A DNA stretch of 64,000 bases, from contig OZ037765.1 in assembly GCA_964035545.1 (NCBI GenBank), forward strand, positions 29,325,504 through 29,389,503, given 5' to 3'. Below the pieces are notes generated by a model that worked only from the letters and a program-made list of their open reading frames with translations, was not told the DNA's origin and made no database searches. This document shows, one piece after another, positions 29,776 to 43,394 of this stretch (positions are counted from its first letter, which is position 1; every line of letters starts with the position of its first letter). This stretch comes from Bugula neritina (lineage: Eukaryota > Animalia > Bryozoa). The position numbers and the translations under genes were made by a program.

Positions 29776-29983
29776 ATGGAGGAGACGAGCATGCTGACCT
29801 CGCTAGATGCCAGTCTCTCAGAACCACACCTTAAAAAGCCTCTCGGTAAAAGGTATGGGGTGAGGCTGAGGGACAGCATAGTGTATAAGATTATCATGTG
29901 CGGAGGATCAAACAGAGGTCAAACTTCATTCATTACTCGGTATACTACAGGGGAGTTTGAGCGGACAATTCCAACCATTGGAA
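29776..29983 (+). CDS. Candidate distal variable first coding exon (V1) of the RAB29-like gene; degenerate P-loop GGSNRGQTS
   Basis: ATG 29776; encodes YKIIMCGGSNRGQTSFITRYTTGEFERTIPTIG; strong phase-1 donor A|GTAAGT at the same TxG| position as V2/V3. No other downstream GTPase exons found before 39509. The spliced product would be 237 aa (..PTIGIDFALK..). Confidence 0.6.
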
Positions 29984-31595
29984 GTAAGTTGAGATATTCC
30001 GTATATTCCTAGTACAGTAGCTATAAGCTAATCAGCACATTCTAGCTTAGTTTTTAGTGTGCTAAGCATCTGACCTTTTTGTATGAGCATGTAATCTGTA
30101 AGTAGCACATCTTTTATGCTCAAACTTGACTAAATTACATGTCTTGCTGCGTAATGTGCATAATGTTATAGAAGTAGCTGAAACATTATGCAGGTAATAA
30201 TGTGTATACTCTTTCCATAAAGGAAGTAGTTTAGTAGATAGTTTTCCAACTAAGCTGTAACCAAATTGCTTTGAAGGATTTCAAATGTTGTAACCTGGCC
30301 CACCGAGTTGTAGACTGCCTTGATATTCTGCTTAGTTTGCAAAAAATATTGTTAGTTTCAAGAAATCTTTTTCTTCTTCATTACTTGAAAGCTGCTACAT
30401 TTTTGTGACATGCTACTTATTCTAGTGATTGTAAGAAATTATCTTCCCAGTTATTATCTAAAAGTTTGTCCACATTGGGAAGCCATTTTAACATTGGTGT
30501 GTTTTGATACTGACAAAGGTTTGAGTATTTGATCAGGAGATAAGAATGTTTTGCTTGGCACTTATTATATCACCATATTGCAGGAGTATTGTAATGACAT
30601 ATTCTAGTTTGCTGTTTACTTTCTTAAATGCTCAGCAAATTAGAGTAGCCGTTTTTGAGACCCCTTCGTTTATTTAAGACATAGTTAAACATGCGAAACT
30701 ACATGGTTAAAAATTATTCAGGTTTTATGTTGAATTGCAGTGTTTTTCATATCTCAAAGGGATCAGACCTAATATTATAGGAGCTCATTTTATTTAACAT
30801 ATTTGAGAAGACAACTCCAACCATGATTTTAAATCAGTTTTGTCACCAAATTTACACATTTCTCTATAGGCCAGGCTTATTATATTGATACCTACTTATT
30901 AGATTCATAATAAAAGAAAAATTTTATTGTTAGCAACAAAAATAAACTTGTTTCTCAATTTATGGGATGTGAAACATTTAAATGTGTCACTAATATGCCA
31001 GAAAAGTCAAATGTCCTTGAGTATAGAGAAATACATGTCTATAAATTATTCAATATTTTTGCAGCATTTTCTTATCCCAAAGCTGACATCTAGCATTTTT
31101 ACTAAATTTTTTTGTTTGTATGCCAGGCAGACCAGGAGAGCACAACAAATGCACACATGTGGTCGATTCTTAATAAATTCATTGGGTGTCATTATTATTC
31201 TTATAGTTTGTATTTCACCTGTGTTTTACCTTTCTATTCACAACCTCATGACTTTCTCAGTTGTTCAACACAAGAGCGTTTGTTTACTCTGGCTTGAGGT
31301 GCCTGCAGGGATGAGTGAGTCTTTTGTCATGGGCACAGTTTTATTGGTTTCAGCATTTGGTTATGTTTACATCTCTTGACTACAAACTGTTCTGAGTGTT
31401 TACTTTCTCTTGATTAGGTGCATCCAAAGAAAACATACATAATTGATGAGTATATGTAATCAAATCAATAGCATTTCAACTGGCATATCACAGTAATAGT
31501 TATAATAATATTTGCTATTGCTGATCAACATTTCAATCGAGGAACTCACTGGGGAAGTTGGGAATATTTTTTGCGGTCAAGTTTGCAAAAAATTC

Positions 31596-41700: not shown

Positions 41701-43394
41701 ACGCCTGTGTCATCATGTTTGACATAACTTACGAGAAGTCCTTAGAGATCTGCTTACAGTGGAAAAAAGATTTAGACAGCAAATGTACTCTTGACAATGG
41801 AGATCCTATACCATGCATTCTCCTAGCTAACAAAGTAAGTGCTTTGTATAGGTTACTCGTTGTTACCTACTCACTCTCACATGAAAAGTAGTAGTAGTAA
41901 TAGTAGTAGTAGTTGTAATGGTAGTGGTAGTGGTAGTAGTAGCAGTAGTTGTTGTAGTAGCAGTAGTAGTAGCAGCAGCAGTAGTAATTGTAGAGTGGTG
42001 GTAATAGCAGCAGCAGCAGCAGTTGTAGTTGGGCAGCAATAGATCTATTTAGCAGTATTGAACAATAGTGAATATTGCTTTAAATTGAATTTATTAAGCT
42101 TCAAGGAAGTTATGTGGGCAGCTCCATTACACTTTTATTGCTGGTCGGCTTTACACAATTTTTCAAAAGGCCTTTTGAAGTATGCCAATACACTGTCATC
42201 AACAATTCGACTCAACATGTCTGCCTGTTTGCTGTGTACCAGGAAGAAACACTGTTGTTACTCACCAGCAGCCTCTCCTATTAGATAACCAACCCCCAGG
42301 TCATCATCTGTGCTTTATCTTATCTACTTAATGTCAACTTCAAGTTTAAACCTCTCCACCATGTTGAGTTAGTTAGTGTAACCTAATAAACCCCATTTAC
42401 AATATAAACTACACGCCAATTGGTGTGTGCTTTGAGCTGCCAGCTCTGGCCATCTGCACTCGGCAGCAAGTTTCCACTCACTTTCTCTGCTGCCCTCATA
42501 CACTCATACATCAGCGACAGCAGAATGGTTCGCCTCATAACACTCAGTCTCTTCTCTTTGCCTTAGCTTGTAACAGGATGACACGAAATAGTACCTCCTA
42601 TACTTTGTTTTGTTGTGACTAGTTCATTGGCAGCATTATTGGCAGCATTGTTCGAACTAGTTCACTCACTTATGTTCAGGTAGATTTGGCCGGCAGAAGA
42701 CGATTCTCAACTGAGGAAATAGAACAATTTGCCAGGGAAAACAATTTCATACATTTTATGGAGACTTCAGTTAAAGAGAATATCAATGTGGAAGAGTCCA
42801 TGCAGTGAGTAGGAAATAGATTTGTAGTATTTCTATTATTTTTCTAATATTTCCAGTGTTTATGTGGCAGTAGTAATAATAGTTTTGCTTTCTATACTAT
42901 AAATTCATTGTTTACTATTTTCTTGTTGCATGAGTAATTTATTATCATGTAAACTATATTTAGTTGCTTATTAAAGCCCACTCATATATTTTTAGTTTTA
43001 ACACTTATTATTAGATTGTGAATATTCTCTGTGTGATTCACCACTCCTCAAGTACATTATTCAAGAGGAGACAACTTTTTATTTTATATCAGTTGCTCAC
43101 TAATCAGTACTCTATAGATTTTAATGTACTTATAAAGGCTTATAAAGGTTGCAGGTTTATTCAACAGTGCTGTTGTTTGGTTTTATATGAATTGCTTAGA
43201 TTGCCTTAGTTTCTTTGAGTATTTCCTGTCACATGCCTTCTTCATATCATAATTATGATTATTTTAGATACTTAGTAAAAAATCTCCTTCAGCACGAGGA
43301 TCTGCCAAGGCCCCGGCAGCGTGACAGCAGCGATCCTGTACTTACCAATCAGCCCAGTAGTAAATCTAAGGACAAGAATGGGTGCTGCTCTTAA
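38757..43394 (+). CDS. RAB29: Rab29 (Rab7L1)/Rab32-38-family small GTPase, proximal isoform V3 + constant exons, 214 aa
   Basis: Exons 38757-38895 (GPRFAGKTT..YRETVG), 39509-39580 (VDFALK..LQLWDIAG), 41653-41834 (QER..YYQDAHACVIMFD..WKKDLDSK..PCILLANK), 42680-42804 (VDL..ETSVKENINVEESM), 43268-43394 (..GCCS stop). WDIAGQE, VDFALK and WKxDLDSK mark the Rab32/38/29 clade; DAxACVIMFD and ETSVKEN favour RAB29; C-terminal CC is the geranylgeranylation motif. Confidence 0.9.
40352..40370 (+). repeat. G19 homopolymer
   Basis: Run of 19 G. Confidence 0.9.
40646..41119. repeat. Compound pyrimidine microsatellite (CT)n-(CCCT)n-(CT)n, ~475 bp
   Basis: (CT)n ~40646-40793, (CCCT)n to ~41107, then a short (CT)n; located in a Rab intron. 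Confidence 0.97.
41887..42039. repeat. Degenerate (AGT/AGC)n trinucleotide microsatellite
   Basis: AGTAGTAGT..AGCAGCAGC runs in the intron after the ANK exon. Confidence 0.85.

Follow-up and report, generated by a model that had tools for sequence, protein, structure and literature searches.

The stretch of Bugula neritina (Bryozoa) DNA analysed here, 64,000 nucleotides (nt) long and called the window below, contains a gene for the small GTPase Rab29 (also named Rab7L1) with alternative beginnings. Three ATG-bearing first coding exons (V1, V2, and V3) precede one set of constant exons, C1–C4 (Table 1). We regard this architecture, namely one Rab29 gene with three alternative first coding exons on one constant body, conserved across bryozoan lineages, as virtually certain. 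Because V1 has been conserved and yet lacks the lysine that normally holds guanosine triphosphate (GTP), the gene probably yields both working switches and a switch-dead look-alike of them.

Each V exon has an in-frame stop codon 5' of its ATG, is 3n+1 nt long, and ends with Thr-[Ile/Val]-Gly plus one nucleotide at a GT donor. Each encodes beta1, the P-loop, and switch I and aligns with positions 1–33 of Pfam Ras/Roc, and C2 and C3 match the remainder of the Ras domain. The phases join unbroken from every V exon through C1–C4 to the terminal CCS prenylation motif. A previous sequence-only reading of the window had proposed the boundaries of the V exons, their ATG starts, the shared phase-1 donor, and a single DFALK..WDIAG exon. 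All of these were confirmed, and the last is present in a single copy within the window.

Table 1. Exons of the Bugula neritina Rab29 gene and of the genes nested in its V1 intron (positions within the window; aa, amino acids)
Feature	Position	Strand	Description
V1 first coding exon	29776..29983	+	69 aa + 1 nt; 237-aa isoform
V1 codon at the Walker A lysine position	29920..29922	+	CAA (Gln)
Nested gene A, inside V1 intron	exons 31596-31745, 31880-32596	+	~290 aa, Cys-x2-Cys motif
Nested gene B, inside V1 intron	33332..37100 (end approximate)	+	secreted/transmembrane, mannose-6-phosphate receptor/ATG27 type, PF02157 E 6e-7
V2 first coding exon	37382..37526	+	P-loop GPAEAGKT, 22-aa segment; 216-aa isoform
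V3 first coding exon	38757..38895	+	P-loop GPRFAGKT, 22-aa segment; 214-aa isoform
C1 constant exon, 72 nt	39509..39580	+	DFALK, interswitch, WDIA(G); common acceptor for V1, V2, and V3
C2 constant exon, 182 nt	41653..41834	+	switch II QERTQxM to G4 ANK; loose RNA end C1 to C2
C3 constant exon, 125 nt	42680..42804	+	G4 Asp, G5 ETSVK
C4 constant exon	43268..43394	+	alpha5, hypervariable tail, CCS prenylation motif, stop

The array is shared by other bryozoan genomes. The V3 protein is 96% identical to KAF6031951.1 of Bugula neritina. The locus is colinear, at 84–92% identity, with the independent Bugula assembly that corresponds to this protein, and all seven exons (V1–V3 and C1–C4) are present there; the array is therefore not an assembly artefact. 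With such a divergence, the two assemblies are probably different members of the B. neritina complex. In Watersipora subatra, the two RefSeq isoforms, which exist solely as automatic annotation, are of the V1 type (X1, XP_067945053.1) and the V3 type (X2, XP_067945059.1) and have an identical constant part. The Watersipora locus has the order RA-PH gene, V1, nested gene A (described below), V3, C1–C4, and metabotropic glutamate receptor gene, with the same flanking genes as in Bugula. V2 is absent from this locus and from two other loci. The contigs of the remaining relatives were taken as probable bryozoan by sequence and synteny. In three such samples, C1 is preceded by a V2-like and a V3-like exon in tandem, and V1 lies on a separate contig from that sample; further contigs have V1 and a single V3-like exon. 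The array expected in relatives was thus found, either with V1 and V3 or with all three exons, and the V3 type is the more widely shared member of the V2/V3 pair. In a tree of the V exons built from 36 columns only, the V1 sequences form a single clade on a long stem (99/97), and the copies of V2 cluster together (97/83), suggesting one V2/V3 duplication.

RNA contigs of four runs, belonging to three studies, were aligned over positions 34700–40600, a span outside which V1 and its 5' end lie; the contigs were accepted as RNA because they are spliced. The V3–C1 joint (38895^39509) was observed in three runs (X1, X2, and X3) and the V2–C1 joint (37526^39509) in one (X5); a second run has a loose end of V2 type. 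For V1, a loose end before 39509 in X3 and X5 matches the last 30 nt of the exon at 29 of 30 positions. These are the junctions that the sequence-only reading had predicted, V1 being represented by the loose end. The V2 and V3 contigs are colinear with the genome for 200–800 nt 5' of the ATG (V2 contigs to about 37168, V3 contigs to 38423 in X3 or about 37970 in X2), with no upstream joint among the joints listed. The other Bugula type has a 9-nt indel, and this, not an upstream exon, accounts for the 32 nt left unaligned at the 5' end of a long V3 contig.

The exons could also be artefacts of assembly or decaying copies, or they could be chained into one tandem V1-V2-V3-C1 transcript, given that phase-1 AG sites with an open frame lie 11 nt 5' of the V2 ATG and 47 nt 5' of the V3 ATG in Bugula. 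We give hardly any credence to these possibilities: the array is shared by the independent assembly and other species, the RNA contigs go straight through the AG sites, the V exons join C1 directly among the joints listed, and the upstream frames are closed within 3–9 codons in several other species. Since the contigs run through the in-frame AG sites that could permit V-to-V chaining, V2 and V3 act as alternative first exons. From the colinear 5' ends of contigs, which cannot show starts, we infer separate promoters for the V exons.

Searches were run exon by exon or with database proteins, and by sequence the constant part is identified as Rab29 (Rab7L1), ahead of Rab32/38. C2 matched Rab29 in the PDB at 2e-19, Rab32 at 2.5e-14, and Rab38 at 7e-13; the nearest database proteins are named Rab-7L1, and a structural comparison with Foldseek, given below, agrees with the Rab29 identity that had been assigned from the sequence. 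The constant exons carry WDIAG, ANKVD, ETSVK, and CCS, so that the G3–G5 motifs and the prenylation cysteines are all present. With canonical Rab29/Rab7L1, the bryozoan proteins share DFALK, WDIAG, ANKxD, ETSVK, the di-cysteine tail, and the intron after the switch I TxG. Rab29 isoforms of vertebrates and molluscs have their breaks or insertions exactly in front of DFALK, and the intron after the V exons is therefore ancestral. Its position, one nucleotide after the switch I Thr-x-Gly, differs from those in Bugula Rab32 (earlier) and Arf1 (one codon earlier).

One difference from canonical Rab29 lies in the V exons. The GDxxVGK loop occurs in no bryozoan isoform, whereas the Asp is present in 105 of 106 non-bryozoan matches. 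The spacing from the GKT position to TxG is 20 residues in 101 non-bryozoan Rab29 matches with a P-loop versus 19, 22, and 22 in V1, V2, and V3, as the earlier reading had correctly counted. N-termini resembling V1, V2, or V3 were not found among about 100 non-bryozoan Rab29 proteins, all of which have GDxxVGK and, barring one or two, the 20-residue spacing. Two Logan contigs (P0010 and P0019) have V3-like exons with a Pro-containing P-loop but the canonical 20-residue spacing; they might possibly come from earlier-branching bryozoans, which would date the two-residue insertion.

The constant part has its own bryozoan feature. Switch II reads QERTQxM in every bryozoan C2 examined, versus QERF[TS]xM in other Rab29 proteins, and hence the LRRK2 phosphosites T71/S72 and a near-invariant Phe have been lost (C2, 41653-41690). 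The equivalents of D43 and W62, the LRRK2-binding residues of Rab29 (bioRxiv 10.1101/2022.04.26.489605), are retained in C1 and are hence common to all isoforms. We looked for a second Rab29 in the Bugula genome and found none; a canonical Rab32/38 whose first intron differs is the closest paralogue there. No extra P-loop exons were found upstream of Bugula Rab32 (10 kb) or Rab26/37 (25 kb). A further Rab first exon, read as Rab20-like, lies about 14 kb 5' of the window start on the minus strand (29311701-29311796 of the contig). Small contigs of the Bugula assembly (C33, C42, C66, C90, C101, C110, C160, and others) carry intron-poor Rab/Arf genes containing many in-frame TAA/TAG codons and are probably contamination from ciliates using an alternative code.

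The most unusual feature of the gene is the P-loop of V1. V2 and V3 fit the G1 motif GxxxxGK[TS] and V1 does not: its loop reads GGSNRG[Q/A/T]TS in 12 of 12 V1 sequences, and Lys is never present. The sequence-only reading had treated V1 as having a normal GKT loop and overlooked that the Bugula exon reads GQT. V1 otherwise contains a conserved basic N-terminal stretch, beta1, the degenerate loop GGSNRGQTS, alpha1, and a 19-aa segment to the switch I Thr-Ile-Gly. Loss of the P-loop lysine in Ras sharply lowers nucleotide affinity. In Rab proteins, this lysine is central to the exchange that GEFs (guanine-nucleotide exchange factors) mediate (PMC3919270). The missing lysine suggests that V1 would be nucleotide-poor and uncoupled from normal cycling. 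An AlphaFold model built on the Watersipora V1 RefSeq isoform shows a complete Rab fold (mean predicted local distance difference test score, 82.9) that is well folded across residues 31–60. Foldseek ranked Rab29 first for this model (target-normalised template-modelling score of 0.93), with Rab29/32/38 as the closest structures. Because the switch I of V1 resembles that of Arf1, an Arf origin was considered and found unsupported: V1 sequences score 18–29 bits on Rab29 and V2/V3 profiles versus 6–12 for Arf1, whose donor lies one codon earlier than that of V1.

The main rival explanation is that all three isoforms are active GTPases. The P-loop of V1 would be rewired, with its invariant Arg (N-R-G) or a residue of a partner replacing the lysine, and the cassette would tune kinetics and effector choice, as has been proposed for RAB37. 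V1 indeed retains the two glycines of its P-loop, the switch I Thr, the G3–G5 of the constant part, and a Thr/Ser following the lysine position; the Arg is invariant in the 12 V1 sequences, and the modelled loop region is well folded. We nevertheless consider this rival rather improbable, since the lysine position accepts Gln, Ala, and Thr, suggesting that no phosphate contact constrains it, and since the Arg site corresponds to Val14 of Ras, which does not point at the phosphates in canonical P-loops.

Several observations weigh against our own reading of V1 as a nucleotide-poor isoform. The V1 isoform retains an intact G3, G4, G5, and switch I Thr, which makes residual nucleotide binding possible, and the invariant Arg before the second Gly might compensate in the altered loop. 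The modelled fold is biased to canonical Rab29 because canonical Rab29 proteins dominated its alignment. The V-exon tree has few columns, and its deeper placements, including that of V1, are tentative. The RNA contigs are blind to transcription starts, strand, and tissue pattern. The V1 junction is a loose end in two runs plus a Watersipora RefSeq model, with no single long read from V1 to C4.

Purifying selection on all parts of the gene is shown by the orthologous comparisons, in most of which the ratio of the nonsynonymous (pN) to the synonymous (pS) proportion of differences is at most 0.3. Between Bugula and Watersipora, the V1 core is identical at 30 of 33 residues (pN 0.054, pS 0.79, with synonymous sites saturated), and the basic stretch just 5' of the V1 beta1 is also conserved. 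In this comparison, the constraint on the V1 core is at least as strong as that on the constant exons (pN 0.08–0.22) and stronger than that on V3 (pN 0.17). Between the two Bugula types, V1 has one nonsynonymous versus eight synonymous changes. V3 is identical at 36 of 36 residues between two species despite a pS of 0.62. The V2 and V3 cores are identical at 27 of 37 residues (pS 0.81, pN 0.22, with synonymous sites saturated), in line with the old duplication under purifying selection suggested from the sequence. V2 orthologues diverge faster than V3 orthologues, and between the two Bugula types V2 has three nonsynonymous versus two synonymous changes, which are small numbers.

Selection might instead act on the promoters, that is, on expression by tissue or stage, with the coding differences between V2 and V3 being near-neutral drift after duplication. 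The absence of V2 from three loci, Watersipora included, implies that this exon is dispensable in some lineages and would fit such drift, as would its faster divergence. This explanation, which we find unlikely, does not account for V1, whose odd P-loop has become fixed and exceeds the V3 core in conservation, nor does it fit the retention of V2-specific and V3-specific residues across species.

The sequence-only reading had also proposed that the cassette diversifies specificity towards pathogen effectors. Rab29/32/38 are indeed cut by the protease GtgE at the G|V bond in this region (PMC5752668), and a diversification cassette between host and pathogen or symbiont that evades GtgE-like effectors could further draw on the nonsynonymous changes in V2, small as the numbers are, and on the fact that two of the RNA runs are symbiont-metagenome samples. 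We judge it very improbable. The residues read by GtgE (T, I, G, D, F) are essentially alike in all isoforms or lie within the constant exon, only two or three variants exist, the low pN/pS and the invariance of V3 between two species indicate constraint, and we know of no bryozoan pathogen effector. The cleavage site is real, and the role in pathogen specificity is unsupported, with no sign of diversifying selection.

How the array might have arisen and work can be outlined as follows. In the bryozoan lineage, an ancestral first coding exon ending after the switch I Thr-x-Gly would have duplicated, an early duplication giving V1 and a V3-type exon and a later one giving V2. Promoter choice would set which P-loop and switch I dock onto the shared G domain. 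V2 and V3 keep GxxxxGK[TS] and are predicted to bind and cycle GTP. Their bryozoan-specific P-loop, with Pro replacing the usual Asp, and their switch I, longer by two residues, probably entail different contacts with GEFs, GTPase-activating proteins, and effectors. Nucleotide binding by V1 is most likely weak or absent, and this isoform would not undergo the usual GEF cycling. It could be a putative pseudo-GTPase that shares the prenylated tail and the interswitch/switch II face with the active forms and serves as a decoy, a dominant-negative tuner, or a nucleotide-independent adaptor on lysosome-related or Golgi membranes. We lean towards the whole account, including a pseudo-GTPase role for V1. 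The chances are about even for its most specific form, in which promoter choice lets one Rab gene make active GTPases and its own conserved, nucleotide-blind pseudo-GTPase; the effector face and the membrane anchor would be identical, and the isoform would act as a built-in decoy or constitutive adaptor.

Two additional genes on the plus strand lie between V1 and V2, beyond what the sequence-only reading had described. Nested gene A is kept between V1 and V2/V3, at 36–46% identity, in all relatives with contigs covering the site, including Watersipora, where it lies between V1 and V3; it gave no Pfam match and no Atlas match above 0.8. Nested gene B is spliced in RNA (35167^36116 and 36240^~36711), and its 3' untranslated region extends to the V2 5' region. 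It occurs at the same place in several other probable bryozoans and was not detected in the Watersipora locus. A lysosome-related Rab thus hosts, in its V1 intron, a same-strand gene of the mannose-6-phosphate-receptor/ATG27 type. An intron of nested gene B contains a small inverted-repeat element (36274-36531; 65-nt arms, 85% complementary) resembling a miniature inverted-repeat transposable element, at which the RNA contigs reach a very high, multi-copy depth. The C1–C2 intron holds a (TC)n/(TCCC)n microsatellite of about 470 nt (40647-41120). Farther away on the minus strand, a Gypsy-like long-terminal-repeat retrotransposon (13907-18384; 1350-aa open reading frame) apparently occupies an intron of the RA-PH gene (lamellipodin/MIG-10 type) that lies upstream; its 122-nt direct repeats are 100% identical and indicate a recent insertion. 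Also on the minus strand, a BEL/Pao-like element (50725-55984; 1436-aa open reading frame) with identical 300-nt direct repeats lies within the downstream metabotropic glutamate receptor gene.

Rab specificity usually diversifies through whole-gene duplication, and exon-level swaps inside the G domain are, to our knowledge, rare (RAB37 and RAB6A). The swapped part of RAB37 is reportedly the N-terminal P-loop/switch I region, and we know of no report of a RAB37 form without the Walker A lysine. The alternative exon of RAB6A/RAB6A' is said to be a mutually exclusive internal one rather than a first exon and to leave the P-loop untouched. N-terminal tandem-duplicated exon substitutions are a known class with 40 human events (PMC9741552), into which bryozoan Rab29 fits with its homologous tandem exons, their alternative use, and the common downstream exon. 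According to Martinez Gomez et al. 2021 (PMC8373072), human RAB37 is an ancient case, conserved to Drosophila, in which a Rab gene likewise uses homologous duplicated exons as alternatives, and the residues that differ make up a patch on the protein surface, thought to alter its partners. RAB37 has two alternatives versus three in Bugula Rab29, and the different Rab subfamily implies an independent origin. RAB6A and RAB6A' are alternative splicing isoforms of one Rab gene that differ in three residues (Echard et al. 2000, as cited in PMC4771738). These cases provide precedents for an architecture that the sequence-only reading had not known for a Rab.

The comparison with UGT1A and the clustered protocadherins made in the sequence-only reading is sound for the arrangement: these loci and GCNT2 also place tandem homologous first exons on common constant exons (PMC1885805). 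It does not extend to a large adaptive array, since bryozoan Rab29 has only two or three variable exons; two unrelated genes are nested among those of Bugula, and the split runs through the G domain. Neither adaptive expansion nor stochastic promoter choice was apparent at bryozoan Rab29. Among pseudoGTPases, the pG1/pG2 domains of p190RhoGAP and AAGAB resemble V1 in that selection has conserved a GTPase fold whose G1 motif is degraded. The retained fold and a predicted lack of nucleotide binding and hydrolysis would place V1 in class i of the pseudoGTPases. They are separate domains with broadly degraded motifs (PMC5593906, PMC12490416), whereas V1 is altered in G1 only and comes from the gene that also encodes the active forms. 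Our literature search turned up no paper about bryozoan Rab29 or about alternative first exons of Rab29.

The array is real, expressed, and conserved, and for a specialist in small GTPases its surprising part is the conserved lysine-less isoform. It has been fixed since at least the split between Bugula and Watersipora, for which synonymous sites are saturated. It has been seen in bryozoans only, and its function is deduced. V1 is a candidate for a pseudo-enzyme that an active enzyme's own gene produces as an isoform. If the account is true, the gene would be a natural domain-swap experiment in which the P-loop and switch I are separated from the rest of the G domain. The three natural P-loop/switch I cassettes on one G-domain scaffold could serve as a test system for the P-loop lysine and switch I length in the Rab29/32/38 group, addressing nucleotide binding, GEF use, and effector choice.

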